From Scyliorhinus canicula (Eukaryota), in contig NC_052162.1 of NCBI RefSeq assembly GCF_902713615.1, positions 123,962,653-124,026,652 of the forward strand: a stretch of DNA of 64,000 bases. The letters are read 5' to 3'. The position numbers were made by a program, and so were the translations under genes. Below the pieces are notes generated by a model, which saw only the letters and a program-made list of their open reading frames with translations, ran no database searches and had not been told where the DNA came from. Position 1 is the first letter of the stretch. Each line of letters starts with the position of its first letter. Below, piece after piece: positions 83-54,570 of this stretch.

Positions 83-1489
83 TCAGCAGATGGAATGACC
101 GAGTGAATCCCTTCCCACACACGAAACAGGTGACTGGCTCTCCCCGGTATGAACTCTCTGGTGTCTCCTCAGTGTGGATGACGTTTTAAACCTCTTTGTG
201 CAGTGAGAGCAGCTGAACGGTCTCTCCTCAGTGTGAATGCGCTGGTGGATCATCAGTACCTTCGAGCTTTTGAAATCCATCCCACAGTCAGAGCATTTAA
301 AGGGTCTCTCATTGGTGTGAGTGACATTGTGGCTCAGCAGGGTCGATAAGTCACCGAATCCTTTCCCACAGACGGTACAGGTGAATGGTCTCTCCCCAGT
401 GTGAACCCGCTGGTGTCTCCGCAATGTGGATGACATTTTAAACCTCTTTGCGCAGTGAGAGCAGCTGAACGGTCTCTCCTCAGTGTGAATGCGCTGATGG
501 GACAACAGATCCTCAGAACCTTTGAAGCCACTCCCACAGTCAGAGCATTTAAAGGGTCTCTCATTGGTGTGAGTGAATTTGTGTCTCAGCAGGGTCGATG
601 AATAACCGAATCCCTTCCCACAGTCGGTGCAGGTGAATGGTCTCTCCCCAGTGTGAACTCGCTGGTGTCTCCGCAGTGTGGATGACCTTCTAAACCTCTT
701 TGTGCAGTGAGAGCAGCTGAATGGTCTCTCCTCAGTGTGAATGTGCTGGTGAACCATTAGTACCTTAGAGCTTTTGAAATCCATCCCACAGTCAGAGCAT
801 TTAAAGGGTCTCTCATTGGTGTGAGTGACATTGTGTCTCACCAGGCTGGATGATTGAATGAATCCCTTCCCACACACAGAGCAGATGAAAGGCCTCTCCC
901 CCGTGTGAATTCGACAGTGTCTATGCAGGGCGGGTAAGTGTGCGAATCCCCTCCCACAGACAGAACACACGAATGGCCTCTCTCCGGTGTGAATTCGCTG
1001 GTGTGTCTGGAGGGTAGCTAAGTGAGTGAATCCATTCCCACACACAGAGCAGATGAATGGCCTCTCTCCGGTGTGAACCCGCTGGTGTGCCTGCAGGTTG
1101 GATGACTGAATGAAACTCTTCCCACATACAGAGCATCTGAATGGCTTCTCACCTGTGTGAATTCGCTTATGTGACAGCAGGTGGGCTAGCTGACCGAATT
1201 CCTTCCCACACTGAGAGCAGGGGAACGGCCTCTCCCCTGTGTGAAATCGCTGGTGTGTCTGCAGACTATGTAACTGAGTAAATCCTTTCCCACACTCAGT
1301 GCAGGTGAATGGTTTCTCCCCAGTGTGAACTCGCTGGTGTCGCCGCAGGCTGGACGAATCACTGAATCCCTTTCTGCACTTCAAGCAGCTGAATGGCCTC
1401 TTCCCAGCGTGACTGCGTAGATGAGTTTTCAACTGCGATGAGTACCTAAATCCCTTCCCACAGTCCCCACAAGTCCACCGTTTCTCCAT
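83..1489 (-). CDS. C2H2 (Kruppel-type) zinc-finger protein with 16 intact fingers and no KRAB/SCAN/BTB domain (ZNF-A)
   Basis: ORF 83..1519 has repeated CxxC-x12-HxxxH with TGERP/TNERP/TEERP linkers. The likely start is the Kozak ACCATGG at 1489 (MEKRW). A 17th finger is frameshifted near 140: another frame reads [23 protein letters not shown]. Confidence 0.9.
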
Positions 1490-1824
1490 GGTGCGGGTGC
1501 CCTTTTGTCTCCAGATCAATCAGCTGACGTCTTACACGTGTACGGTCTCTCCCCGCTGTGAATGGTGCAATGTTTTTTCAGGCTGTGTAACTGGTTAGAG
1601 CTCTTTTCACAGTCAGTGGAACACTCTCACTCGGGTGTGTGTGTATCTCGGTGCTTTTCCAGTCACACTGATGGTTGAAGCCTTCTGAAGCAGACAGAAC
1701 ACTTGTCCTTCTAGGTTAAAAAAAACAAGAATATTCTGCACCCTAGTGCCTGAGTAACGCAGTCAGATTTGGATGTGAATTTGGGTTTGAGATTTCTGTC
1801 TGTAAATCCTCGCCTTCTGATATC

Positions 1825-2215
1825 CTGTAAAAGGATATTACAAAAAGACATCACTGTCAGCACAGGTTGGAAATTAAGAACAGACAATTCAAGTTTGTAT
1901 TCAACAACTGTTACTCTCTTTTCCCAAAAGCTCTAAATCTCCATCCCACACACTCTCCCTCCATTCTCACTCTGCTGTATCTAATATTCACCCTCCCAGT
2001 TCTCCTGAGGGTGCTGATTCAGGCTGATTGACAGATCCATGCTCACTGCTTCTGGTCCGCAACACAGAGACCTGAAAATCTTCATGCAGGCTGCCAGACA
2101 GACGTATGTCTATATTACTGGACTAAAAATGTGTGTAATATACAGGCAGGATTGCTGCAAGTCACCAATGACCCTCCAGAATGAGAAAAGTAATAGAAAG
2201 GGGAAAACATTGATT
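1825..2215 (-). other. Intron-like segment upstream of ZNF-A (acceptor ccttttacAG at 1826-1825)
   Basis: Its reverse complement aligns with both ends of the ZNF-B intron (3090-3145 and 3725-4037). Confidence 0.6.
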
Positions 2216-2227
2216 TCCTCCCAGAAG

Positions 2228-2567
2228 GGGTGGCACGGTAGCACAGTGGTTAGCACTGTTGCTTCCCAGCGGCAGGATCCCTGGTTTGATTCCGGGCTTG
2301 GCGAGTCTCTGTGGAATTTGCACATTGTTCCAGTGTTGCATGGGCTTTCTCCGGGTGCTCTGGTTTCCTCCCACAGTCTAAAGATATGCAGGTTAAGTGG
2401 ACTGGCCATTCTAAATTGCCCTTGATGTCCAAAAATATTTGGTGGGATTACTGGGTTACGGGGATAGGGTGGAGGTGTGGGCTGAAGTGGAGTGCTCCTT
2501 CCAAGGGCCGGTGCAGACTCGATGGGCTGAATGGCCCCCTTCTGCACTGTAAATTCTCGGATTCGAT
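2228..2567 (+). mobile_element. tRNA-derived SINE (HE1/V-SINE-like) with CR1-type 3' tail
   Basis: A/B-box-like head GGTAGCACAGTGGTTAGCACTG...GGTTTGATTCC, body TTTGCACATT...GGTTTCCTCCCACAGTC, tail GATGGGCTGAATGGCC. Confidence 0.85.
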
Positions 2568-2599
2568 GTTGTACAGAGGAGAAAGTTTCAATCTAGAGC

Positions 2600-2860
2600 T
2601 AATTGGGTAACGTCACTATGGAGCCCTGCCTGATTCAGCCAATAGCAATCACTCTACTCCGCGGTGACGTCTCCGAGTTCTCGTCCCCGGCACCCATCCG
2701 CTCACCCCCACCCGATTCCCCCCGCACCTCCTCTAGACAAGGTTTCCAGGCAACCGGCTGACGGTTCCGGCCAGAGCGAGAAGCCGCTCAGTCTCTCTCC
2801 CTCCTCGGCCCGGAATTGCGCATGTCCAAGGAGAGGAAAGCTGCGCATGTGCAGGGGAGC
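2600..2860. promoter_or_regulatory. Putative bidirectional CpG-rich promoter between ZNF-A and ZNF-B
   Basis: CCAAT box (AGCCAATAG ~2637), CRE-like GTGACGTC (2664) and two NRF1-like TGCGCATGT (2817, 2842). The set is conserved in the inverted copy at 29560-29810. Confidence 0.6.
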
Positions 2861-3071
2861 TCACGCCCCGTTGACCTTACTGCTGAGGTGTTGCCCAATG
2901 AGAAGATTGGAGGACCGGAAGGACTCTGCTCCTCCGCCAATCAGAGCTCCCCCATTGTCTCAATGCAGAAGCTGGACATGGAGGTTTGTGCCGAGCAAAG
3001 CTGTTGTTCCCTCAACCCTGAGTGAGCTTGAGCTGCACACAGACTGAACCTTCCTCCCGTCTCCAACATCT

Positions 3072-4037: not shown

Positions 4038-4322
4038 GATGTTCGATCGGAAGGAGCTTGAGGCCGATATCTCAAACTAAACATCAAGTCAAGAACTGAC
4101 TGAGTCACTTAATTCTTAGGAAATGAATATCATCGGCCATTGAATCTGGAACAAAAAATGTTTGCTTATTTTGTATGCTGCAAGAGATTTTAAACATCAC
4201 TTCCAATCCACTGACCGTGGAAAGAACTTTAACCTGTTACACAGCCTGAAAAAATACTATGCTATTCACAGCAGGTGTACACATGTTCTGTGTATGGACA
4301 AGGCTTCAACTGATTGTCAAAC

Positions 4323-5192
4323 ATGGAGAGACAGAAGATCACCCAGACCATGGACAAACCATGGAAATGTGGGGACTGTGGAAAGGGATTCACAGCCCCG
4401 TACGAACTGGAAAGGCATCAATGCAGTCACACTGGAGTGAGGCCATTCCTCTGCTCTGAATGTGGGAAAGGATTCACTCGGTTAGCCCACCTGCAGACAC
4501 ACCAGCAAATTCATACTGGGGAAAGGCTATTTACCTGCACTGTGTGTGGGAAGGGATTCAGTCAGTTACCCAACCTGCTTAGCCACAATGTCACTCACAC
4601 CAATGAGAGACCCTTTAAATGCTCTGACTGTGGAAGTAGTTTCAAAAGCTCTCAGGTACTGATGATCCACCAGCGCATTCACACTGAGGAGAAGCCATTC
4701 AGCTGCTCTCACTGCATGAAGAGGTTTAGAACGTCATCCGACCTGATGAAACACCAGCGGGTTCACACCGGGGAGAGGCCATTCGCTTGCTCCGATTGTG
4801 GAAAAAGATTCGCTCGGTCATCCCACTTGCTGAAACACAACATCACTCACACCAACGAGAGACCCTTTAAATGCTCTGACTGTGGGAGTGGGTTTAAAAG
4901 CTCTCAGGTATTGATGGAACATCAGCGCATTCACACTGAGGAGAGACCGTTCAGCTGCTCTCACTGCACAAAGAGGTTTCAAACATCATCCACATTACGG
5001 AGACACCAGCGGGTTCACACCGGGGAGAGTCGATTCACTTGCACTGATTGTGGGAAGAGATTCCGTGATTCATCCGCCCTGTTGACACATCTTCGAGTCC
5101 ACACTGGAAAGAAGCCATTCACCTGCTCTCACTGCGGGAAGGGATTCACTCAGTCATCCAACATGCTGAGACACCAAAGGGTTCACAAGTGA
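4323..5192 (+). CDS. C2H2 zinc-finger protein with 10 fingers (ZNF-B)
   Basis: ORF 4314..5192; ATG at 4323 or Kozak ACCATGG at 4350 (MDKPWKCGDC); ends HQRVHK followed by TGATGA. Confidence 0.9.
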   Translation: MERQKITQTMDKPWKCGDCGKGFTAPYELERHQCSHTGVRPFLCSECGKGFTRLAHLQTHQQIHTGERLFTCTVCGKGFSQLPNLLSHNVTHTNERPFKCSDCGSSFKSSQVLMIHQRIHTEEKPFSCSHCMKRFRTSSDLMKHQRVHTGERPFACSDCGKRFARSSHLLKHNITHTNERPFKCSDCGSGFKSSQVLMEHQRIHTEERPFSCSHCTKRFQTSSTLRRHQRVHTGESRFTCTDCGKRFRDSSALLTHLRVHTGKKPFTCSHCGKGFTQSSNMLRHQRVHK

Positions 5193-9884: not shown

Positions 9885-10425
9885 AAGAGAAAATGCTGGA
9901 AAATCTCAGCAGGTCTGGCAGCATCTGTATGGAGATATGCCAGGTGTACAGAGTTGCTCCTGTTGAGCTGGTGCACAATACCCTACCAGTTATTCTATTT
10001 TATTTGTTATTGTACTTTTTTTTATTATTTATTTTTTTCTTTTCTTTGGTATGTTTGGGTGTGCCCTTCTCTTCTATATACGTGTGTTTATATATATATA
10101 TGTTTCTTATCCTGTGTACATAACAGTAAATATACTTTGTTCAAAAACCCAATAAAAAACATTTATTTTAAAAAAAAGAAAAGAGCTAACGTTTCGAGTC
10201 CAATGACTCTTTGTCAAAGCTAACAGACAGAGAAAGTGGGAAATATTTATACTGTGGAGTGAGAATGAAAGATGAGTCATAGCCACAGGAATCCGGAGAA
10301 ACCGGGTGGTGGCCACAGAAACCAAGGGGAAAGAGTGCTAATGGCAGTCCCCAGAGAGAACAAAAGATGTGAAATGTCAAACAGCAGGGAAACTAACATT
10401 TCCAGTTTTTATCCAGTTTGTTACC
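9885..10425. mobile_element. Penelope-like element fragment, itself interrupted by an L1-type 3' tail (~9932-10180)
   Basis: 10-bp flanking duplication ACATCTACAG (9875, 10426); AAATGCTGGAAAATCTCAGCAGGTCTGGCAGCATCTG...AACGTTTCGAG resembles shark Penelope termini. Confidence 0.55.
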
Positions 10426-10565
10426 ACATCTACAGGATCCCCATTCTACACTTGGCTTCTTACATCTTCGGAGACCTCTACCAAATTAGTCAAACATGAA
10501 TTACCTTTTATAAAACTATGCCGACAGGGCTTCCTGTGTGCACCATGGAGTAAGTGGTCACACAC

Positions 10566-10768
10566 ATAGAACATAGAACAGTACAGCACAGAACAGGCCC
10601 TTCGGCCCTCGATGTTGTGCCGAGCAATGATCACCCTACTCAAACCCACGTATCCACCCTATACCCGTAACCCAGACTCCACACAGACAGTGACCCAGCC
10701 GGGAATCGAACCTGGGACCCTGGAGCTGTGAAGCATTTATGCTAACCACCATGCTACCGTGCTGCCCA
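10566..10768 (-). mobile_element. HE1-like SINE (internally deleted) in the L1 5'UTR
   Basis: tRNA-like head and (CATAGAA)n tail; nearly identical to 27342-27691. Confidence 0.85.
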
Positions 10769-11614
10769 CAAGGCAGCTCCTGCCCAAGGTTACAGAAAAG
10801 AGGTGTTTTTTAATCAATATGGGGTAGAGTTTTGATGAAAAGGTGTAGGTGAATGTTGGAGAAGTACTTTCCCCCAGGAATGGTATGTTTCTTGGTTACC
10901 AGACCCGCAGAAACAGTGAAAGATTTGGCTGAAGCTGCAGCAGAGACAAAGCCTCTTCCAGCATGCAGGCGGGGGAAGGGTGAACTTAAAGGCCTCAAGC
11001 TAACTTGAGGGCCTTTCTGAAAGCTGAATTCTAGCAGCAGAAGGAACAACTGTGACAAGATCTCACCAAGGCCATTGAAGGAGCTGTGACGGCTGACTTC
11101 CGGTGACGGCGGGCGGGAGGCAGCCGCGCGTTGGAGGGCTCCCATTCGGGAATGGCATTGTCTGGGATTGACGCCCGGTCCTAGGGGCAGCGAAGGCCGT
11201 GAAGGCCAGGAGAAAGCACAGGGAGGGGATATGTCGAGGTCCAGTAAGAAAGCAGCTGTGAAAACAGCTGAATATTCGTCGGGTTGTAGAAAGGTCACCA
11301 CGGGGTCACCAAGGAAAATGGAGGCTGGAGCATCAGGGGAGGCCACATTGCTTACGGCTGAAGAAATAACAAAGGTAATGGCAGTGTAATTCGAAAGGCA
11401 GTTTACAAAATACATGTAGACAATGAGGAAGGAGATGAGGGAGGTTTTGAGTGTGCTGGTGGAGGAGGCGATTTCCCCAGTGACGACGGTGGTGGGGAGT
11501 GCACTGGCGGAGGTGCGGGAGCAAGGGGAGGCGAAAGTTGCGGAGACATTATTGCACCATGGTGATCAACTTACGTCGATGGGGAAGGAGATGTGGAAGG
11601 TGATGGAGATTCAT

Positions 11615-12392
11615 TTTTTTTTCTTCTGACAATATTTATTTATAAATGACAATCTCTGTAACTAAACCCAAATGTGACTCCTTTACACAAAAGAAAGATT
11701 TTCAGCATCTGACTCACTCACACAAACAAACACACACACACACTATTCTTTTCACAGTTTCTTTACTCCCGATAACTTTCCCAGCTTCTTCTCGTGTCCT
11801 TGGTTTGCTCCGGCCACTCCATGGCCCCGCCCACCAAACACACCTCTGCCAGCACCCCCACCAGCTCCTCGCCCTTTCTGTTGTTGCTGCTGCTTCTGTT
11901 GCTGGAGGCCATGACCTCTGCCCTTTGACACCACCTCTTCTTTCACCATATGAAAATGAAAATTGCTTTATTGTCACGAGTAGGCTTCAATGAAGTTACT
12001 GTGAAAAGCCCCTAGTCGCCACATTCCGGCGCCTGTCCGGGGAGGCTTGTATGGGAATCGAACCGTGCTGCTGGCCTGCTTGGTCTGCTTTAAAAGCCAG
12101 CGATTTAGCCTAGTGAGCTAAACCAGCCCCTATCAACCATATCAATGATTTCATCAGCGATGCGCAGATATTTAATGGTGCTGCCACGAATGTAACATTC
12201 CGGCATCTTCCAGAACTTGTCCCCATCCCTGGATGTACAAATGACCTCTCGCAGGTTAATATTCATCCAGTTGTCACAGCTGACCAGGTGACCATTGTAG
12301 GTTTCTCCATTCTTCAACTCCACAAGCATCGGATGATTTTGCGCCGTCTTCAGTAAAGAAAGGGGAAGCATTTTGTCGCTGCCGCGGAACCC
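11615..12392 (-). pseudogene. LSM4: Processed pseudogene of Sm-like protein LSm4, interrupted by a SINE
   Basis: Intronless [40 protein letters not shown]...DEIIDMV (12371-12136) continues as KEEVVSKGRG...RGG-rich tail (11949-11752); AATAAA at 11640-11635; poly(A); 16-bp TSD GGTGATGGAGATTCAT (11599, 12393). Confidence 0.95.
11952..12130 (-). mobile_element. Short tRNA-derived SINE inside the LSM4 retrocopy
   Basis: GGGGCTGGTTTAGCTCAC head and (TTTCA)n tail; ACCATAT duplicated at 11945 and 12136; same family at 18871 and 20779. Confidence 0.85.
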
Positions 12393-13490
12393 GGTGATGG
12401 AGATTCATAAGGATCTGCGAGGAAAAATGGAAGACCTGCAAAACAGATCCAGGCGACAGAATTTGTGGATTGTGGGGCTGCCCGAAGGAGTTAAAGGGCC
12501 GAGGCCGACTGAGTAATTTGCTGCGATGCTGGCGAAACTATTGGGGGAGGGGGAGGATCCCTCCCGATATGAACTGGATCGGGCTCATCGGTCGTGGAGG
12601 CCTGTACCAAAGACGAGTCAGCAGCCAAGGGTAGTGACTCTGTGCTTCCGTAGGTACAGTGTGAAGGAGAAGGTCCTGTGCTGGGCCAAGCAGAAGCGGG
12701 TGGTGCAGTGGGCTGGAGCTGGTATACATATATACCAGGACTTTACGGTGGAGCTGGAAAGGAGGCGGGCTGCTTTCAACCGGGTGAAGAGGGCACTGTA
12801 CATTAGCAAGGTGCAGTGCGGCATTGTATATCCAGCGAAGCTGAGGGTGACGTACAAGCTCAAGGCATTTTATTTTGGAACGGTGGAGGCAGCGGAGGAG
12901 TTTGCGAAGGCAGAAGGACTGTGGCAGAACTGAGAAATTGAGAAATGATTATGTGCCGACATAACTTCATGACTGTATTTTCTTTGTTCTTGTTCGTTTG
13001 TTTCACTGCGTGCGGGTGTATGGGATAAAGGAGCCGATGTATATATTTGGACAAGGGAAGTGATGGGACTTGCACTCGAAGTGAGGGCTCTTTGGGGTGT
13101 AGGTAAATATGCGGGGTTTGTGCGCTAAAAGGGGATTTCTGGGTTTTCCTAGGGCCGGGCAAGGGGGAAAGGGACCCAGGCGGGGGCCTCCACACTGGCC
13201 GGTCTAAGCCGGCCAGCGAACGGGAGTGAGGTGGGTGATGGGGCTGCGGCCATCAGAGCCTGGCAGAACAGGGTCCGAGTGGTCTAGTCGGGGTGGAAAG
13301 TTGGGGGGAAGGAACTGAGGTTGGGGGAAGGAGTTTTACAAAAGGCAGTGGACGGGAGGAGTTGGGGAGGAGTGGGGGGGGGGGGGGGGGAGAGGGGGGG
13401 GGGGAGTGGGGTGGGGGGGGGAGTTTACAACTCTTGGGTATCACGTACGGTACTCTTTCAGAGGTTGGACGGCATTGAGTGTGTGTGTGT

Positions 13491-13521
<31 letters not shown>

Positions 13522-13864
13522 GGGGGGTGGACTCTATGGTGGCCATGGGCAGCCCTGGACTCCTTTTTTCTTTTTTGTTTCCACTGTGGGAGGGTTTGTT
13601 TTATTGGATGCATATATTGACAGGTGGGCCGTTGTTTGGGTGGTAGGAGGATGGGATTGGTGTTATTGTTAAGGGGATTGATTTTGTATTTGATACCATT
13701 TACTGTCTGTGAATGGGGGGTAAATTTTGAAGGAAAATGTGAAAATGGAGAATAAAAACATTGATTAAAAAAATAAAATAAAACTATGCCGACTATGATG
13801 GATTGTGTTTTGACTTTCCCAATATCCTGATATTACTTCCTTAATAATGCTCGAGGATTTTCAC

Positions 13865-15430
13865 CGAGCAACAGTGAAAAACGGCGATTTGCTTCCAAGT
13901 CAGGATGATGTGTGGCTCAGAGGGGAATTTGCGGATGATGGTGTTCCCGTGTGTCTGTAGCTCTTGTCCTTCTCTAGGTGGCAGAGGCTGTGGGTTTGGA
14001 AGTTGCTGGTGATACAGCCATGGTGAATTCCTGCAGTGAATCTTGTCGGTGGTACACACACTGCTGCCTCTGTGTGATTGTGGTGGAGGGAGTGAGTGTT
14101 GAAGGTGTTGGATTGGGTCCCACTCAAGTGGTCTGCTTTGTACTGGATGGTGTCGAGCTTCCTGAATGTTGATGATGCCGCACTCATCCAGACAAGTGAG
14201 AATAATCCATCACATCCCTGACCTGTGCTTTGCAGATGGTGTACAGGCTTTGGGGATTGAGGAGGTTAGTTCCTCTCTACAGAATTCTCAGCCTCTGATC
14301 TATTCTTGTAGCCACAGTGTTGATATGGCTGTTTCAGTTCAGTTTCTGAGTGAATCAAATTGACTGAAGATTGCCGTCTGAGATGTTTGGGACCTCAGGA
14401 GGAGGTCGAGATGGATCATCAACGCGGCACCTCTGGCTGAAGATTATTGTGAATGCTTCAGCTTTGTCTTTTATATTGAAGTGCTGGGCTCCCTCATCAT
14501 TGAGGATGGAGGTATTTGTGCAGCTGCCTCCTCCTGTTAGTTGTTTAATTGTCCATCCCTATTCCCAGTGGGTGTGACAGGACTGCAGAGCTTAGATCTG
14601 ACCCCTTGGTTGTGGGATCTCTTTGCCCTTTCTATAACAGGTTGCTTTTGCTGTTTGCAGGTAAGTAGTCCTGTGTTGTAGCTTCACCAGGTTGACACCT
14701 CATATTCAGGTTTGGCTGGTGCTGTTCCTAGCATTCTCTCCTGCACTCTTCATTGAACTGGGTTGATCCCCTGGCTTGATCTTAATGTTAGAGTGAGGGA
14801 TATACCAGGCCAGGAGGTTGTGATTTACTTCAATTCTGCTGCTGATGGTCCAGAGCGACTCATGAATGCCCAGTTTAGAGTTGCTAAATCTGTTTAAAAT
14901 CTATCCCATGTAGCACAGTGGTAATGCCATACAACACGATGTGGGGAGGGGGGGGGGGGGGGCATTATTCTCCATGTGAAGATCATAGTTTTCTCAAGAA
15001 CTGTGTGGTGATCACTCCTCCCAATACTCTCACAGATGGATCTAGTTGTGATAGGCAGGTTGGTGAGGATGAAGTTCAGGAGGTTTTTCCCTCTTGTTAC
15101 TTCCCTCACCACCTGCTGGAGGCCAAGTCGAGCAGTCTGTCCTTTAGTACTCAGCCAGCTCACTGAGTAGTGAATCTACTGAGCCAGTGATGGACATTGG
15201 AATCCCCCACCCAGAATACATTCTGTGTCCTTGACTCAAAGTGATGTTCAGCATTAAGGAATATTGATTCACCAGCGGGATGGGGCGGTAGGTGATAATC
15301 AGCAGGAGGTTTCCTTGCCCATGTTTTACCCGATGTCACGAGACCTCTTGGGGTCGAGTCAATGTTGAGAACTCTCAGGGTCACTCCCTTCCAACTGTAT
15401 CCCACTGTCCACACAGATCCCACCGTCCAC
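13865..15430 (-). mobile_element. Decayed CR1/L2-group LINE fragments
   Basis: Endonuclease-like QVVREVTRGKNLLNFILTN...IGRSDHHTVL; 3' part similar to 27830-28400 and 41870-42210. Confidence 0.6.
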
Positions 15431-18870: not shown

Positions 18871-19048
18871 TGGGCTGGTTTAGCTCACTGGGCTAAATCA
18901 CTGGCTTTTAAAGCAGACCAAGCAGGCCAGCAGTACGGTTCGATTCCCGTACCAGCCTCCCCGAACAGGTGCCGGAATGTGGCGACTAGGGGCTTTTCAC
19001 AGTAACTTCATTGAAGCCTACTCGTGACAATAAGCGATTTTCATTTCA
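18871..19048 (+). mobile_element. Short tRNA-derived SINE
   Basis: Same family as 11952-12130; B box GGTTCGATTCC. Confidence 0.85.
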
Positions 19049-20778
19049 TACACAGCACAGAAACAGCAAAACCAATCCATGCCAGTGTTTATACTTCACT
19101 TGAGCCTCCTCTCATGCTCCCATCTGACTCGATCAGTGTATCCGTTTGTTAATTTCTCCCTCATGTGTTCATCTAGCTTCCCCATAAATATATCAATGTT
19201 ATTCACCTCCACTAATCCCTGTGGTAGCGAGTTCCACATTCCCACCACTCTCTGGGAAAGATGTTTCTGCTGAATTCCTGATTAGATTATCTCACATTCA
19301 TAACTTCAAGTTTTTGTCTTATTATTACAAGTGAAAACATTCTTCATGTGTATCAAAACTTTTCATAATTTACAGACCTCCATTAGCCCCGAAGCCTTGT
19401 ATTTTGATAAGAGCAGTGGTTGGCCTATTCATCATCTGATAGGTTTAACCTCTCACACGAAAAATCTGAAGACAAAAATGCTTTGTTCACACTTGAGCTC
19501 AGCACAGGGATAAAGTTACAGCAGATTCACTGAGATTGGGTGGGCTGGTCGGATCTGTGTGAATAATCTGGTTAATCAGACTGTCCATGATCAGGGACTT
19601 GGTGTTCTGGGTAGTGGAGGAGCCCAAGTGACAGCCTTCAGTAACAGATTGATTTGCATTTATACAGCACATTTAATGTAATTAAACATCCCAAGGTGTT
19701 TTACAGGGACATTGTAAATCCAGGTTTCACAAATGATTTGATAAAATTGTCCAAGCTCATGATCATGTGACAGAAAACACTTCTTCGTTCTGTCTCTGCC
19801 TCCGCACACTCCCTCCCTATTGATTGTAACACTAATTCATCCCACTATCCTCCTTCTGCTTTTCTCCCAATTCTCCTCCCCTGAAGTTGCTGACTCTCGG
19901 GTTCAGCTTGACACTCAGCTGTTGCCCTCCCCAATATGTCCACCCAGGTGTCTGAAGTTAACAAACTGTTTTCTACGGGAGACGTCAGAATCAAACCCAA
20001 TCAAACCCAATGACATGTACTTTGTGTCCGGAATGGGGTCACTGCCCCCACTCCCACTTTGATCCCAGTCCCAGGGGTTTGGAGACTGGTTTGGAGATGG
20101 TTAATGGCGGCTCAATCTCCCATACTCCCCCTCGCCGGGGAAACCGCTCTATCCACCGGGCGCGGGGCGGCCGCGGAGAGGAAACCATGCGTAGTGGCGG
20201 TTCTTCCTGTTGGGGTCAAAAGGGCTTCCATCACCACGTGACATCCGTTGCCCATTGTTTTCAGTCTGTTATTCAAACCCAGAATCTGCAATGGTGCAGC
20301 AGCCAGCAAGACAGTAATAAAAAGGGACACATGGATCAGACAAGGATTTAGAAAAGATTCTTTACACATGGACCAATTACCAATGGCTCCGCCTGGGGTA
20401 ACATCTCCATTTTTTCTTCTCCTGATGGAACACCGTGAGTTCCAGGTTCCTGGTACATTAAGAAAGATGCTTCAAGGAACAGATTAAGCATGGATGTTAA
20501 AGATTCTCCAGCTCTCTCTTTGTGGACAGTTCTTACTCAGTATTATTTCTCCCAAGCCTTTCCTTGTCCCATTATCACTTTAATTTCACTCCCACTTTGC
20601 CCGTGTCCAGTGTGTTTAATTCTATCCGGATTGTTTTAAAGTCAGTTTCTCTCTGGAGTGTGTGTCAATGTCTTGATGATGTCACAATGGTGTCTCAATC
20701 CCCTGGCCACATTAACCATTTCATCTCCTGCTGTGTCTCCAGTAGCTGTGTGTGTTTGGGACCCGGTCTTCAGGGGCT

Positions 20779-20951
20779 AGGGGCTGTTTAGCTCACAGGG
20801 CTAAATCGCTGGCTTTGAAAGCAGACCAAGGTAAGCCAGCACGGTTCGATTCCCATAACAGGCACCGGAATGTGGCGTCTAGGGGCTTTTCACAGTAACT
20901 TCATTTGAAGCCTACTCGTGACAATAAGTGATTTTCATTTCATTTCATTTC
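20779..20951 (+). mobile_element. Short tRNA-derived SINE
   Basis: Same family; (TTTCA)n tail. Confidence 0.85.
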
Positions 20952-35725: not shown

Positions 35726-37585
35726 TTTTTTTTAAATAAACGTTTTATTGAGATATTTCTTTGGCATTTCAACAACAAAATCAACAATATACATAACAAG
35801 AAAAATATAAACATAGTGCAAATTCCACCTTCCTCTCCCACAGGTCTTGCTATTACTTACCCCCCTAACGTACGCGAACCTAACCCCCTCCCTCCTTCCC
35901 TTTCTGCTGACGATTAGTTCTCTGCGAGGAAGTCGATGAATGGTTGCCACCTCCGGGCGAACCCCAGCAGAGACCCTCTCATGGCGAACTTAATTTTCTC
36001 CAGGCAGAGGAAGCCAGCCATGTCCGAAAGCCAGGTCTCCGATTTCGGGGGCTTTGAGTCCCTCTACGCCAACAATATCCGCCTCTGGGCTACCAGGGAA
36101 GAAAAGGCCAGAACATCCGCCTCTCTCTCCTCCTGGATTCCCGGATCCTGCGACAACCCAAAAATCGCCACCTCCGTACTCATTGCCACCCTCATATTTA
36201 ATACTGTGGACATGGCGTCGGCAAACTCCTGCCAAAATCCCCTCAGTTTAGACATGCCTAGAACATATGGACATGATTCGCTGCCCGCCCCCACCCACGC
36301 ATTTCACCTGTCCACCACCCATCCGGGCCACTGTCATGTGAGCCCAGTGAACAACCTTCAATTGGATAAGGCTGAGCCTGGCACATGTTGCAGTAGTATT
36401 GACCCTTCCTAACACGTCTATCCAGAGGCCCTCCTCTGTCTCTCCCTCCAGCTCCTCCTCCCACTTTTGCTTCAGCTCCTCGGTTTGCATCTTCTCTGAA
36501 CCCATAAGCTCTCTATATATGTCCAAGACGCTTCCCTCCCCTATCCATCCTCTAGAGACCACCCTATCCTGAATTCCCCTCAGCAGAGTGGGAAGGTTGG
36601 TATCTGCTTCCGCAAAACGTCCCGTACCTGTAAATATCAGAATTCATTTCCCCCAGCCAATGCTAACTTCTCCTCCAGCGCCCTCTTACTCGGGAAGCTG
36701 CCTTCCAAGAACAAGTCCCCCATCCTGTCAATCCCCGCTCTCCGCCAAATTCGGAACCCCCGTCCATCCTCCCCGGGGCAAACCGATGGTTGTTGCAGAT
36801 TGGGGACCACATCGATGCCTCCTCTGCTTCCACATGTATCCTCCACTTCCCCCAGACTCTCAGGACCGCCACCACCACTGGACTGGTGGAGTACCGCGCC
36901 GGGGGGGACGGCAGGGGCGACGTCACCAATGCCCCTAAACTTGTGCCATTACATGAAGCTGCCTCCATGCGCACCCACGCCGGCTCATCCCACACCAGCC
37001 ACCTCCTAACCATGGCTGTATTAACCGTCCAGTAGTAATTGCTGAAATTCGGCAGCGCCAGCCCACCATCCTCCCGACTCCGCTCGAGCATTGCCCTCTT
37101 CACCCGCGGGGGCTTGCCCTCCCACACAATGCCCACGATAATCTTATTGATCCGCTTAGAAAAGGATCGCGGGATGAAGATGGGGAGGCACTGGAAAACG
37201 AAAAGGAACCTCGGGAGGACCATCATTTTTACCGACCACCCTACCCACCAGAGACAACGGGAGCGTTTCCCATCTCCGGAAATCCTCCTTCATCTGGTCC
37301 ACCAACTGGGCCAGGTTCAATTTGTGTAGCCTGTCCCAATCCCTCGCCACCTGAATACCCAAGTACCTAAATATGTCCCCTACCACTCTAAACGGCAGTT
37401 CCCGCAGTCGCCTCTCCTGACCTCTCGCTTGAACTACAAACAACTCGCTCTTCCCCGTATTAAGCTTGTACCCCGAAAACCGACCACGTTCCCCTAAGAT
37501 TCGCATAATTTCCCACATCCCCTCCATTGGGTCTGAGACATAGATCAGGAGATCATCCGAATACAGCGAGACTCAGTGCTCCACA

Positions 37586-37616
<31 letters not shown>

Positions 37617-37870
37617 GACCAACCCCTTCCAGCCCCTTGAGGCCCTCAGAGAAATTGCCAGCGGCTCTATCGCCAGCGCAAACAGTAGTGGGGAGAGGGG
37701 ACATCCTGGTCTCGTCCCCCGGTGTAGCCTGAAATATTCTGGTACAGCAACCTAACCCAGACAACAAAGCCCCTTCCAAACCCGAACCGCTCCAGCACCT
37801 CCCATAAGTAATCCCACTCGACCCGGTCGAAGGCTTTTTCCGCGTCCATCGCAACCACCACTTTAACTTC
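35726..37870 (-). mobile_element. L1/Tx1-type LINE, ORF2 3' half (RT to 3'UTR and A tail), decayed
   Basis: [58 protein letters not shown] and NHVHMF motifs. Confidence 0.9.
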
Positions 37871-40861
37871 CCTACCTTCCGGGACTTGTGGGAGGAAACG
37901 GGAGCGTCCGTAGGAAACCGACACAGACTCGGGGAGAACATGCAGACTCTGCACAGACAGTGACCCAAGCGGGAATCGAACCCTGTTGGACAGGGATGCT
38001 TTCAGCAGACATTGTGTTCCAGGAGCAGGTAGGGTTTGTACTGCTGGGGTAGAGATTGTGAGGGTTTGATGGGGGTGTCTGGGGCATAACGTTGGGAGTT
38101 GGGGTGATTGCAGAGGGTTAAAGACAGATTGGAGACAGAGATGGGAAGGTGGTGGGGATGTGTGGCGGTGATCATCAAAAAGGGGTCAGTGATTGAGAAA
38201 GGAGGGTCAGTGATCATGTAGGTAGGGGTGGTCATACCATGGGAGCTTCCTGCTAAGGAGGTTCTGTTGCGGCAGGAGCCCAGTCACAAGGTGAGAGAAA
38301 CAGGTTATCTGGGGGTTTGGGAGAAAGCACTCCGGCTCCTCAAGGCCCATGAGGAGTACTGGAAGGGCAAAGCAGTCCTCGCCTACTTTTAGCTGGTGGC
38401 TTTTCAAGGCCCGAGAAACTTATTTGGCCAAGTTTAAATTTTAAATGGAGCCAGAATATGAGTCTGCAGCCTCATTAATAAATTAAAATGAGTAACTCAC
38501 CTTCGAGAACAGATTGGTTAACTTTCACCAAGTTATAGAGTCATAATCGCACAGCAAGAAGTTCTTCAGCCCATCAAATACTTGCTGGGTCTTTGTAGAA
38601 CAATCCAATAAGTCCCAATGTACCTGTTCTATTCCCATAGCCCTGCAAGTTTATTTCCCTTAAATACTGATCCAAAATCCTGTTGAAGTTATTTGTTGTT
38701 TCCACTTCTGCCACATTGCTGAGCAGAGAGTTCCAGGTCATTATGACTCGTTGTGAAAAAAAGTTCTTCCTCACCCCCCCCTCAAACCTGCCTATAGATT
38801 TTGCCTTAAGGGCAGAATTTTGCTGTCCAAAATGGGGTGAGAACAGAGGATGCATCTATTAAAACCAAAATGGGTATATTCGAGGTGGTTTGGTTTGGGT
38901 TTGAGACATCTTAAATTTCTACATCCCACTCAACCCAGACCCATCCGTTTGTTTTTTTTAGATAAAATTTGCCTCAAAAGATTTGATTGCCATTTGTCTG
39001 CTGTGGCTGACCTTAACTTCTTTTTCACAATGGCATTGCTAATAGCACTTTCTGCAATGGTAGTTGTTATTGCAATTAAACATCAAATCAAACACAGGAC
39101 ATAAATAAGTTTAAAACAGTGAGAGTTAACTGACCTGCCCGAAAAGCTTGATAAGCTCTTATTCAATCCATCTTTAGCCTGATACATCAATATCTGCAGC
39201 ACATTGTCCATTTTGCACAATTAGATGGACAATCTTCAACTTTTGTGACCTACTTTGTGAGCACATCATTGAAGATGTATCAATTGGCCAATTCATTGAG
39301 CAATCATAGAAAAGTTGAGGTTGTAATGATTACACAAGACTTGGACATCAGACTCAATGACTGTCTTTTCATTTCTTGACAGACGTACATTAGGGTTTGA
39401 AATACAAACTTTCAAGCTAGGTCAAAATATACAAAATCTGATAAGATCGAGCTTGTTTGTTGACTCCCCCGACTTAAATGCTCTCTTTTCCATGCATTTG
39501 TGAATCTTTGCTGTTGGTGTGTTCATCAGCCTGCATTGGTTCCTCATTGTCGGATCCAATAAGATTATGGGTATCTCCTTGAGTCTGACAAAAAGCATCG
39601 CTGTTGTGATCACAGTTATATACTGTTGCCGCTTCTTGCTTGATAACATTGCTAACAGCTCAAAGTTATGCCAGTAAGACTCAAACTGCTACAAATGTTG
39701 CTGCTGCTGGTTGTAAATCTGAAAATGGCAACACTTTGAGTTTGTCACATCTGAATGCTTGGAGATTTTCAATGGGTTATCATATTTTTTAATGTGGTTT
39801 TAAAAGGCACTTGCGAATGGTTTTTCCGAAAGCATTTATCACAAGGAGGCAAATTCCATTTGCTCTTTCAAATTTTGGTTAACCATGCTGAGCACTGATA
39901 TTTGAGTAGTGTTTCACCGGGTTGTTAATGAGGTCAGGCATTTTAAATAGCCGGGTGTCAAACATTGGAAGGTTTGATGCTCTCGTTGTCCCACGCCTGC
40001 ATAAAACCCATTTACAAGTAACCATGTTTCTCATCGATGATGTTTGGCTGTTGGGTACAAGGGAATGGTTCCGGGGATGACATAGCCTTGGACCTCAAAG
40101 TGCCAGGTCAAGGGATAGCTCTGAAACTGGTGATGCTCTGGCTGATGGAACAATATCTAACTTTCCGGCACATGTTGTGTCGTTCTGGGGTAGGGTAGAG
40201 TTGGGTGGGCTAGATGTGTATTCTCTGGGGAATGCCTACCACAGTAATGCCTAGTTACTGATGTGTAAGGGTTGTCTTCTGGGTGGCCAGAAGGGCAATA
40301 AACAACTACTAATGGCTGTTGACTGTTGAAACCAAACTGTAGAGACTGTGTCATACTGGAGCCCAGGATCCAACAAGCAGCAGTCTAAACACTCACGACT
40401 TTTAGTATAACTCAGACTTCTGACACCAAGAGTTCTATAGAGATATCCTGAAGTAACCGTACGCTTCATTGTATATCAGTTCTGTAAACTACACAAATAT
40501 AGGTAATGGACTCGCGCACCACCCACAAGATCCAGCAGATTGTCTGGCACATAATCTCATGACTTTGGTAAACATTATTTGCACTCTGCAGCTGAGCAAA
40601 GGTGCCAGTCCAGGTTGCTACTTATTCTCTGCCACCACCACCACCTAGTTCTCTCATTTATGTTCCGTGCAAAGCCCAGTGCTCAAACTGACTTTGGGGA
40701 TGGATGTAAATCCGCTGATGATAGAGAAGGAGTGAATGATACAGGGTGCTGTGAGGTGTGATCAGTAATTTGGGGGTTCACTGTAATAGCTTAAAAAGAG
40801 GAACACATGTTTGCATGATAACTGCAACAAAACACTTTCAAACTAATGCTCCACAGCTAAT

Positions 40862-41027
40862 NNNNNNNNNNNNNNNNNNNNNNNNNNNNNNNNNNNNNNN
40901 NNNNNNNNNNNNNNNNNNNNNNNNNNNNNNNNNNNNNNNNNNNNNNNNNNNNNNNNNNNNNNNNNNNNNNNNNNNNNNNNNNNNNNNNNNNNNNNNNNNN
41001 NNNNNNNNNNNNNNNNNNNNNNNNNNN
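40862..41027. other. Assembly gap (N run)
   Basis: Run of n characters. Confidence 1.
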
Positions 41028-50084: not shown

Positions 50085-53000
50085 GGGAGGTGAGTTGTAA
50101 GTTTAAATTACTTACCTTTGCAGGGGTTGCCGTCAGTTGGATTTCGGCGGGAGCTGGGACACATCAGCTGGTGAGTAGATTTGTAAATTTCATTGCAGGA
50201 GCAGCGGCCAGCCATTGGATACCGGCTATCGGGAGGTGAGTTGTAAGTTTAAATTACTTACCTTTGCAGGAAACAGGAAGTTTGTCCCGCGGACTTCTGG
50301 GAAGGTTTACCCCTCCCTAGTCAATAAATTCTGGTGGAGAGGAAACCAGAGACACTACACGTGTAGTGTCTCCCACCCGCCCTCCTCCTCTAACCTAATA
50401 ATAAGACCCATTGGGGTGAGCAGGTGAGTGCCTTATTACATTATTATTTTTCTTTTTCTTATTTGTTAACCAGAATTAGGTTGGAAAAGACTATAGCAGA
50501 GGTATCCAAGTTTTTTTTTAACTGAAATTTATACAAAGTAATAAAGTAATTAACTAATCAGAGATGGCTGGGCAGGTGATGTGCTGTAGCTGTATGATGT
50601 GGGAGCTGGCTGTTCCCCTTGTGAATGGCAATGACCACATCTGCAGCAAGTGTTGGTTGCTGGAAGAACTCCGGCTCAGAGTTGATGATCTGGAATCTGA
50701 GCTTCAAACACTGCGGCACATCCGGGAGGGGGAGAGTTACCTGGACACTTTGTTTCAGGAGGCAGTCACACCTGGGAGATTAAGTAATTCACATTCAGTA
50801 AGTGATCAGGGACTTCAGAGTGTGACTGTAAGTGAGGCAGGCAGGGGGAACCTGAGTTCAGGAGCCTCAGCCCTTGACCTTGTCCAACAGGTATGAGACT
50901 CTTGCTCCCTGTATGGATGAGGAAAAGGGCTCTGGACAGGATGAGCCAGCTGACCACGGTACCATGGTGCAGAAGGCCATTCAAGAGGGGGGAGTAAAAA
51001 GACAGGTAGTTGTTATAGGGGATTCTATAATTAGGGGGACAGATAGTATCCTATGCAAGCCGGATCGGGAGTCTCGCATGGTGTGTTGCCTGCCCGATGC
51101 CAGGGTGCGGGACATCTCTGACCGGCTTGAAAGGATATTGGAGCGGGAGGGGGAGGATCCAGTTGTTGTGGTTCACGTTGGGACTAACAACATAGGTAAA
51201 GCTAGGGTGGAGGACCTGTTCGGGGACTATCAAGCACTAGGAAGAAAATTGAAATACAGGTCCTCAAGGGTCATAATCTCCGGATTACTGCCCGAGCCAC
51301 GTGCCAATTGGCATAGGGATAAGAAAATTAGGGAAGTAAACACGTGGCTAAGGGATTGGTGTGGGAAAGAGGGATTCCACTTCATGGGACATTGGCATCA
51401 GTTTTTGAACCGGGGGGATCTGTACCGTTGGGACGGTCTCCACCTGAACCGATCTGGAACCAGTGTTCTAGCGAAGAGGATAAGTCAGTAGGACTTTAAA
51501 CTTCTGAGTTGGGGGGAAGGGAAAGTGAAAGCGACAGGGAGCATGGAGTTAAATGGCAAGATACGCAGGAGGATAACATGTAGGCAGGTGGATTTAAGCT
51601 TGAGGCAGACTAGGAATTCAACAAAAAGGAAGGATAACTTTGGACATCTTAGGACTTCCAATATCTGTAATGATAAGAAAGTTAGCATTAAGGCACTTTA
51701 CCTGAATGCTCGTAGCATTTGTAACAAAGTAGACGAACTAATGGCACAGATCATCGTGAATGATTATGATGTGGTAGGCATCACAGAGACATTGCTGCAG
51801 GGGGTTCAGGACTGGCAGTTAACCATACAAGGATATACAACCTATCGAAAAGACAGGGAGGTGGGCCGAGGGGGTGGGGTTGCCTTGTTAGTTAAGAACA
51901 AAATTAAATCTATGGCACTAAACGGCATAGGGTTGGATGATGTGGAGTCTGTGTGGGTAGAATTGAGGAACCACAAAGGCAACAAAACCATAATGGGAGT
52001 TATGTACAGACCTCGTAACAGTGGTCAGCACCAGGGGCGCAACATGTACCGGGAAATAGAAAAGGCATGTCAGAAAGGCAAGGTCACGGTGATCATGGGG
52101 GACTTCAATATGCAGGTGGATTGGGTAAATAACGTAGCCAGTGGATCCAAAGAAAAGGAATTCATGGAATGCTTACAAGATGGCTTTTTGGAACAGCTTG
52201 TCATGGAGCCCACAAGGGAGCAGGCTATTCTGGACCTAGTGCTATGTAATGAACCAGACTTTATAAAAGATCTTAAAGTAAGGGAACACTTAGGAAGCAG
52301 CGATCATAATATGGTTGAGTTCAGTCTGCAGTTTGAAACAGAGAAGGCAAAATCGGATGTAATGGTGTTACAGTTAAATAAAGGTAATTACGAGGGCATG
52401 AGAGATGAACTGGCGAAAATCGACTGGAAGCAGACCCTAGTGGGGAAGACAGTAGAGCAAAAATGGCAGGAGTTTGTATGCATAATTGAGGACACTGTAT
52501 AGAGGTTCATCCCCAAGAAAAGAAAGATTATCCGGGGAGGGATTAGACAGCCATGGCTGACAAAGGAGGTCAGGAAATGTATCAAAGAAAAAGAGAGATC
52601 CTATAAAGTTGCCAAAAGCACTGGGAAATCAGAAGATTGGGAAGGCTACAAAAACAAACAGAGGTGAACAAAGAGACAAATAAGGAAGGAGAGGATCAAA
52701 TATGAAGGCAGGCTAGCCAGTAATACAAGAAATGATAGTAAAAGTTTCTTTCAATACATAAGAAACAAACGACAGGCCAAAGTAGACATTGGGCCAATTC
52801 AAACTGATTCTGGAAGGCTAGTGATGGGAGAAGAGGAAATGGCTGGAGAACTTAATAAGTACTTTGCGTCTGTCTTCACAGTGGAAGACATGAGTAATAT
52901 CCCAAAAATTATAAAGGGTCAGGGGGCTGAGTTGAGTATGGTTGCCATTACAAAAGAGATGGTGCTAAAAAAGCTAAAAGGTCTTAAAATTGACAAATCT

Positions 53001-54570
53001 CCTGGCCCCAATGGGCTACATCCTAGAGTTCTGAGGGAGGTGGCTGAAGAAATAGTGGAAGCGTTGGTTGAGATCTTTCAAAAATCACTGGAGTCAGGGA
53101 AAGTCCCGTACGATTGGAAGATCGCTGTTGTAACCCCCTTGTTCAAGAAAGAATCAAGACAAAAGATGGAAAATTATAGGCCAATTAGCCTCACCTCAGT
53201 TGTTGGTAAAATTCTAGAATCGATCGTTAAGGATGAGATTTCTAAATTCTTGGAAGAGCAGGGTCAGATTAGAACAAGTCAACATGGATTTAGTAAGGGG
53301 AGGTCGTGCCTGACGAACCTGTTAGAATTCTTTGAGGAGGTGACAAGTAGGTTAGACCAGGGAAACCCAGTGGATGTGGTCTATCTGGATTTCCAAAAGG
53401 CCTTTGATAAGGTGCCACACAGGAGGCTGCTGAGTAAGGTGAGGGCCCATGGTGTTCGAGGTGAGCTACTGGCATGGGTTGAGGATTGGCTGTCTGACAG
53501 AAGGCAGAGAGTTGGGATAAAAGGTTATTTTTCGGAATGGCAGCCGGTGACCAGTGGTGTCCCACAGGGTTCAGTGTTGGGGCCGCAGCTGTTCACCATA
53601 TATATTAATGATCTGGATGAAGGGACTGGGGGCATTCTAGCGAAGTTTGCCGATGATACGAAGTTAGGTGGTCAGGCAGGTAGTGCTGAGGAAGTGGGGA
53701 GGCTGCAGAAGGATCTAGACAGTTTGGGAGAGTGGTGCAGGAAATGGCTGATGCAATTCAATGTGAGAAAATTTGAGGTCTTGCACTTTGGAAAAAAGAA
53801 TCCAAGCATAGACTACTTTCTAAACGGTGAGAAAATTCATAATGCCAAAGTACAAAGGGATCTGGGAGTGCTAGTCGAGGATTCCCTAAAGGTAAACATG
53901 CAGGTTGAATCCGTGATTAAGAAAGCAAATGCAATGTTGTCATTTATCTCAAGAGGGTTGGAATATAAAAGCAGCGATGTGCTACTGAGCCTTTATAAGG
54001 CTCTGGTTAGGCCCCATTTGGAGTACTGTGTCCAGTTTTGGGCCCCACATCTCAGGAAGGACATACTGGCACTGGAGCGTGTCCAGCGGAGATTCACACG
54101 GATGATCCCTGGAATGGCGGGTCTAACATATGAGGAACGGCTGAGGATCCTGGGATTGTATTCATTGGAGTTTAGAAGGTTAAGGGAAGATCTAATAGAA
54201 ACTTACAAGATAATACATGGCTTAGAAAGGGTGGACGCAAAGAAACTGTTTCCGTTAGGCGAGGAGACGAGGACCCGTGGGCACAGCCTTAGAATTAGAG
54301 GGGGTAAATTCAGAACAGAAATGCGGAGACATTTCTTCAGCCAGAGAGTGGTGGGCCTGTGGAATTCATTGCCGCGGAGTGCAGTGGAGGCCGGGACGCT
54401 AAATGGCTTCAAGGCAGAGATAGATAAATTCTTGATGTCGCGAGGAATTAAGGGCTACGGGGAGAATGCTGGTAGGTGGAGTTGAAATGCCCATCAGCCA
54501 TGATTGAATGGCGGAGTGGACTCGATGGGCCGAATGGCCTTACTTCCACTCCTATGTCTTATGGTTTTAT
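50085..54570 (+). mobile_element. Near full-length CR1 LINE: 5'UTR, ORF1 (Zn-finger/leucine zipper + SGNH esterase), ORF2 (APE + RT), tail
   Basis: ORF1 has CxSCxM..CSKC, VIGDSII, VHVGTNN and DGLHLN, with a frameshift near 50875. ORF2 has LYLNARS, GITET, MGDFN, SDHN, YLDFQKAFDKV, GVPQGSVLGP and KFADD, with stops at 52500 and ~52665. GGAC flanks both ends; the empty site is at 44772. Confidence 0.95.

Follow-up and report, generated by a model that had tools for sequence, protein, structure and literature searches.

A 64,000-nt stretch of the genome of the catshark Scyliorhinus canicula (contig NC_052162.1, positions 123,962,653 to 124,026,652; here called the window) contains a 3,252-bp unit at 10526-13777 that is flanked by a short direct duplication. 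It is probably a full-length but now dead copy of an element that resembles HAL1 of mammals, a non-autonomous derivative of L1 in which only the first open reading frame (ORF1, the RNA-binding gene) is retained and which is repeated in catshark genomes. Within the window the flanking 16-mer, ATAAAACTATGCCGAC, is present in exactly two places, even when up to two mismatches are allowed, while the chance expectation is 0.01 matches and none of 100 shuffled sequences contained two. The left copy directly abuts TTTT at 10506-10509, the poly(A) signal AATAAA is found at 13751-13756, and an A-rich 11-nt tail, AAAAAAATAAA, is found at 13767-13777. The perfect 16-bp target-site duplication (TSD), the TTTT target, the poly(A) signal and the A-rich tail support the view that an ORF1-only L1 derivative was inserted here by target-primed reverse transcription (TPRT). 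After two nested inserts are subtracted, the unit is 2,254 nt long and consists of a 501-nt leader, a 909-nt ORF1, and an 844-nt G-rich non-coding 3' region. An earlier note, made from the letters of this DNA alone, had described a perfect 16-bp duplication at an L1-endonuclease-like TTTT site, a 5' untranslated region (UTR), about 850 bp of G-rich non-coding DNA with AATAAA and an A tail, and a length of about 2.25 kb without inserts, and all of these features were recovered here.

ORF1 of this copy is dead, and its sequence relationships place it in the L1 type. The reading frame extends from the ATG at 11231 to the TGA at 12931-12933 and measures 909 nt only when the insert within it is left out. 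A three-frame reading found no frameshifts, and three in-frame stops are present (11387, 11417, and 12514). The copy is dead because of these stops and because an LSM4 processed pseudogene splits ORF1; the earlier note was silent on both. In sequence contigs from other copies, described below, two of the three stop positions (11387-11389 and 11417-11419) are occupied by sense codons. When ORF1 is translated with X at the stops, it is collinear from the first methionine to the last residue with P0002 (XP_072362954.1), an intact 305-amino-acid "uncharacterized protein" of the sister species Scyliorhinus torazame, and the two are 82.8% identical. An intact ORF1 of the element family is thus present in S. 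torazame.

The relationship to known L1 proteins is distant, and it is clear from a profile. The 138-amino-acid C-terminal piece (12517-12930) matches only chains of the L1 ORF1 protein (ORF1p) in the PDB, with an E value of about 1e-3. A profile built from P0002 and 16 relatives matches human LINE-1 ORF1p (2ykp/2yko) with an E value of 1e-25, and the match spans the end of the coiled coil, the RNA recognition motif (RRM), and the C-terminal domain (CTD). This match assigns ORF1 to the L1 type, as the earlier note had proposed. The Pfam family Transposase_22 was not matched by any of four ORF1 pieces or by intact P0002; only P0003, a 59%-identical relative, nearly reached it, with 21.9 bits against a cutoff of 22.4. 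A word-based protein search with the 138-amino-acid piece found a single match, the S. torazame model P0001. The same kind of search with P0001 found three Scyliorhinus proteins, and beyond those only relatives that are at most 39% identical by local BLASTP. P0001 and P0003 are chimeric gene models that merely include pieces of ORF1.

The unit has neither space for a second open reading frame (ORF2) nor a trace of one. An autonomous L1 possesses an ORF2 with an APE endonuclease and a reverse transcriptase (RT). No APE or RT motif is visible after ORF1 in a three-frame reading, and none of the ten open stretches that the 3' region contains in its three forward frames has a Pfam match at an E value of 1 or below. 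This agrees with the earlier note, which had reported that no such motif follows ORF1. The 3' region is 40% G and contains G-runs at 13354-13421 and 13505-13527 and a (GT)13 repeat at 13479-13505. An 8-nt tandem duplication, two copies of TGAGAAAT at 12931-12946, begins at the ORF1 stop codon, and contigs of other copies tend to finish at 12936/12937, inside this zone.

Two younger elements lie within the unit. The leader is interrupted by an insert resembling a tRNA-derived short interspersed element (SINE), which is 98% identical to 27349-27459 and 27605-27690 and lacks about 145 nt that are found in the copy at 27349-27690. Further tRNA-derived SINE copies are present in the window at 11949-12132, 18872-19050, and 20778-20940, and the summed contig depth of this SINE is in the millions in all four of the sequencing runs used below. 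ORF1 is interrupted by the 778-bp LSM4 processed pseudogene, which has a perfect 16-bp TSD of its own (GGTGATGGAGATTCAT, 11599-11614 and 12393-12408) and an A-tail that appears as T9 at its left end (11615-11623). The pseudogene is in turn split by the SINE copy at about 11949-12132, where ARAGORN calls a tRNA-like head at 12040-12129. A 399-nt contig from run X1 matches the pseudogene at 99% and lacks the SINE; it may represent a SINE-free allele, another retrocopy, or a sequence like the parent mRNA. No internal monomers or repeats of the "stacked 5' end" kind were found in the leader of the unit. The positions of the parts are given in the table.

Table. Parts of the ORF1-only unit, its nested inserts, and the flanking duplication (positions in the window).
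Feature	Position	Strand	Basis
5' TSD copy, ATAAAACTATGCCGAC	10510-10525	+	Exact-match count in window; TTTT before it
Leader (5' UTR), first 38 nt, upstream of nested SINE	10526-10563	+	Other copies join straight to 10768 onward
Nested tRNA-derived SINE-like insert, ~204 bp	10564-10767	-	98% match within window; skipped by other copies
Leader (5' UTR), remainder; multi-copy	10768-11230	+	Reading frames and contig depth
ORF1, N-terminal part (N-terminal region and coiled coil), stops 11387-11389 and 11417-11419	11231-11614	+	Alignment to P0002
Nested LSM4 processed pseudogene	11615-12392	-	LSM domain, E = 1.4e-18; own 16-bp TSD
ORF1, C-terminal part (RRM and CTD), stop 12514-12516, natural TGA 12931-12933	12409-12933	+	PDB, profile, and alignment
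Non-coding 3' region, 844 nt, 40% G, AATAAA, A-tail	12934-13777	+	Composition; no Pfam match; multi-copy
3' TSD copy	13778-13793	+	Exact-match count in window

Contigs from public sequencing runs show that every part of the unit is present in many copies in three related species. Logan contigs from four runs (X1, X3, X9, and X12) were placed on 10300-14000 at 80% likeness. Organism A is represented by two samples and organisms B and C by one each; X1 is from organism A and X9 from organism B. The listed contigs are 150-430 nt long. The nested LSM4 pseudogene served as the single-copy yardstick, with one contig and a depth close to 13 in X1; since contig depth does not equal copy number, all figures based on it are rough. 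Over the leader, ORF1, the stretch after the stop codon, and the tail, the summed depth in X1 is 3,000-29,000, and tens of distinct contigs cover each listed position of these parts. The depth of the element is higher in organism B than in X1, and the element is also present in organism C. The summed depth of the host repeat around the element (10424-10525 and 13794-14000) is about 170-260 times that of a single copy. In X1 and X9, contigs that connect 10516/10525 to 13796 come from paralogues of this host repeat without the unit, and they look like paralogous empty sites.

The structure of the other copies matches the unit without its inserts. Contigs that join 10562 to 10767, skipping the SINE, were found in X1 (seven), X3 (seven), and X9 (one), with up to 39 nt on the short side, and the SINE-skipping joints in other copies omit 204-214 nt. 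Since this joint is found in other copies, the first 38 nt of the leader belong to the family. The 5' likeness of other copies ceases at about 10524-10526, within 2 nt of the start of the unit at 10526. Similarly the LSM4 pseudogene is skipped by a joint from 11598 to 12393. Other copies of the family thus carry neither nested insert. About 230 positions differ between the present copy and the contigs, and the differences are mostly of the kind expected from CpG decay in the present copy (A in the window and G in the reads at 50 positions, T in the window and C in the reads at 37). Summed depth is about equal over the leader and over the last 250 nt, which fits a short and mostly full-length element; copies of 6-7-kb L1 elements are usually truncated at the 5' end.

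The abundance of the parts differs between organisms. In organism B (X9) the summed depth over the C-terminal part of ORF1 and the first 340 nt of the tail is about 10-15 times that in organism A (X1), but over the leader and the last 250 nt it is only about 4 times as high. Such a pattern may point to a species-specific burst in organism B, involving either a subfamily or a truncated form.

Judging from contig depth, it is very unlikely that the junction between ORF1 and the tail is unique to the present locus. A unique junction would be single-copy, and in X1 the listed depth over 12948-13037 is about 75-fold that of a single copy or more. Across 12948-12950 there are 21-23 contigs from X1, 10-12 from X3, 11 from X9, and 2 from X12, and all of them carry an identical difference from the present copy. 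Contigs with small indels traverse 12985-12992 and 13037. Slightly downstream, at 13072-13105, the contigs number 31-61 in X1, X3, and X9 and 11-24 in X12. The sites from 12948 to 13105 lie 15 to 170 nt beyond the stop codon.

Several observations at the same junction count against an ORF1-only family as the source of all of this signal. None of the listed contigs extends from within ORF1 as far as the distal tail. Contigs tend to terminate at 12936/12937 (X3 and X9) and next at 12985/12986, contig starts cluster near 13037 in all four runs, and the depth between 12936/12937 and about 13037 (about 1,000-3,000 in X1) is below that on both sides. The sites 12936/12937 and about 13037 could be the points where L1 elements that share ORF1 and the tail but also carry ORF2 branch off. 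In that case some of the signal over ORF1 and the tail may derive from ORF2-bearing L1s, and the ORF1-only form may be a minority. If there is such branching, the linker of about 100 nt would be specific to the ORF1-only form, which would then comprise perhaps one or two hundred copies. The clustering of contig ends and the dip in depth could also be due to length variation in a T-rich stretch. Of the HAL1-like family put forward in the earlier note, the L1-type and ORF1-only character, the multiple copies of the parts, their presence in three species, and the existence of insert-free relatives all stand, while the whole junction was not seen in a single contig.

The clustered ends and the dip in depth are also what would be expected if ORF2 had been lost only once, from an ordinary L1 or from its RNA, through a deletion or template switch unique to this locus, so that no family exists and the apparent branch points lead towards ORF2-bearing relatives. 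It agrees with such a single event that the window holds no other copy: BLASTN with word sizes of 11 and 7 and TBLASTN found only matches to SINEs and G-runs. However, in each of the four runs numerous distinct contigs cover the stretch of about 100 nt between the branch points, those contigs share consistent differences from the present copy, indel-bearing contigs cross both 12985-12992 and 13037, and the depths are about 75 times the single-copy level or more. A loss confined to this locus is therefore improbable. A somewhat smaller chance still is given to a different origin of the many copies, in which they are processed pseudogenes of a domesticated, ORF1-derived host gene (as L1TD1 is in mammals) that was retro-copied many times. 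The unit does resemble an mRNA, with a leader, one open reading frame, a 3' UTR, and an A-tail, and the S. torazame relatives (XP_072362954.1 and others) are annotated by NCBI as protein-coding genes. Against this, P0001 and P0003 are chimeric models that include only pieces of ORF1, and the summed depth in three species would require hundreds to thousands of retrocopies from one gene. In addition, the strong contrast in abundance between sister species (X9 compared with X1) is typical of transposon bursts.

The tail raises a further alternative, that template switching fused the leader and ORF1 of an L1 to a G-rich repeat or a host 3' UTR of unrelated origin and that the product was then amplified; the tail would then not derive from an L1. 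The tail does lack significant likeness to the 3' end of the sole ORF2-bearing L1 in the window. That L1 is a single, diverged, and truncated copy and therefore a poor comparison, and L1 UTRs have often been replaced in evolution (PMC5753468). An amplified chimera would remain an ORF1-only family in any case, and this origin is considered the least probable of those weighed here.

The sole ORF2-bearing L1 shows no tie to the unit. It is a remnant on the minus strand at 35726-37970, with the start of the RT region near 37870 and the A-tail near 35726. It is truncated at the 5' end and its frame is broken, a G-run lies within the RT region (37580-37614), and a piece of SINE abuts the 5' end. Its 3' UTR is about 190 nt long, compared with the 844-nt tail of the ORF1-only unit. 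Alignment of the tail with the 3' end of the remnant (35.7-36.4 kb) gave a local score of 27, which is not significant given shuffled scores of 22.5 +/- 2.7 with a maximum of 36. On this comparison nothing links the unit to the remnant, and the partner named in the earlier note, an ORF2 of the kind seen at 35726-37870, is unsupported. A likeness between the last 25 nt or so of the tail and of the remnant (AATAAAA..TT.ATT.A-run) can be seen by eye, and it was discounted as low-complexity poly(A)-signal sequence.

The preferred explanation, an ORF1-only family moved by the machinery of other L1s, would account for the anatomy of the unit in the following way. A source copy would have used its own leader for transcription, and its RNA would have been polyadenylated downstream of AATAAA. 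The RNA would probably have been coated in cis by the ORF1p that it encodes, and it would have been reverse-transcribed at a nicked TTTT/A-rich site by the ORF2 protein (ORF2p) of an autonomous L1 acting in trans, leaving the 16-bp TSD and the A-tail. Decay after insertion would have introduced the three stops and further differences of about 6%, most of them of the type that CpG decay leaves. The later hits would be the SINE in the leader and the LSM4 processed pseudogene, itself hit by a SINE. We infer mobilization by L1 ORF2p in trans from the anatomy of the unit and from mammalian HAL1, and a role of ORF1p in cis is presumed. The LSM4 pseudogene, which has a TSD and an A-tail, demonstrates that polyadenylated RNAs are mobilized in trans by L1-type machinery in this lineage. 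The family itself presumably arose through the loss of ORF2 from a shark L1.

Elements of this organization are known from mammals. HAL1, a non-autonomous derivative of L1, encodes ORF1p alone and has had several origins in mammals, according to PMC5753468, which cites Smit 1999 and Bao & Jurka 2010; the mammalian families in Repbase include HAL1, HAL1b, and HAL1M8. HAL1 is presumed to employ the L1 machinery (PMC4161310). Like HAL1, the catshark unit is an ORF1p-only derivative of L1 with a leader, a 3' UTR, an A-tail, and TSDs, and both are presumed to use ORF2p in trans. Unlike HAL1, it resides in a cartilaginous fish, its ORF1 is so distant from mammalian ORF1p that the link is clear only by profile and Transposase_22 is not reached, and its leader and G-rich 844-nt tail are lineage-specific. 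Because of the distance between the hosts and the lineage-specific UTRs, an origin separate from that of mammalian HAL1 is very likely. Overall it seems likely that the unit is a shark counterpart of the mammalian HAL1 parasites of L1 and that its family is common to related sharks.

Comparison with other systems shows both common and distinct features. Autonomous vertebrate L1s share with the unit an ORF1p with a coiled coil, RRM, and CTD, and also the T-rich/A-rich target, 16-bp TSD, poly(A) signal, and A-tail, but they are about 6-7 kb long and carry APE and RT in ORF2, whereas the unit is 2.25 kb long and has neither. HeT-A of Drosophila is a gag-only telomeric non-LTR element of the Jockey clade. 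Like the unit, it is a non-LTR element that has only the first open reading frame and relies on the reverse transcriptase of another element; it differs in its clade, in targeting telomeres, and in the fold family of its ORF1. L1TD1, a domesticated mammalian ORF1 gene (PMC4161310), also descends from an L1 ORF1 without ORF2, and the catshark relatives are likewise annotated as genes. However, L1TD1 is a single host gene, whereas the catshark unit is a TSD-flanked insertion with multiple copies.

A shark family of this kind would have implications for L1 biology and for genome annotation. HAL1 has so far been described as a mammalian phenomenon with several origins, and among the papers searched none connects HAL1 or ORF1-only L1s with sharks or other fishes. 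A separate shark family would make the loss of ORF2 with retention of ORF1 a repeatable route to parasitizing the parent L1s. It would also offer a second and very distant system for studying the contribution of ORF1p in cis to mobilization in trans. A more speculative and rather doubtful extension is that catsharks harbor a living ORF1-only L1 parasite, independent of HAL1, with its ORF1 under selection and a burst of about 10-fold in one sister species, competing for ORF2p or damping its L1 partner. If this were true, the "half-L1" would have emerged repeatedly as L1 evolved in jawed vertebrates and would not be a mammalian oddity. The copy described here is dead and ordinary for its family. 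For repeat annotation the catshark genome paper relied solely on an automatic pipeline (PMC11979771). Automatic shark repeat libraries probably mislabel such units as truncated L1s or as protein-coding genes, and the gene models of S. torazame are an example of the latter.

The remainder of the window contains another LINE and zinc-finger reading frames. The LINE (long interspersed element) resembles CR1/L2 and is located at 50874-54485 on the plus strand and is apparently near-intact. Its coding regions occur in the order ORF1 with a GDSL/SGNH esterase (E = 2e-12), APE endonuclease (8e-14), and RT (9e-32). Long open reading frames made up of C2H2 zinc-finger repeats and recurring HTGERPF linkers are found at 83-1519 (minus strand), 4314-5192 (plus strand), and 24835-25536 (minus strand), and the window sits in a zinc-finger gene cluster. 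A run of N is present at 40862-41027.

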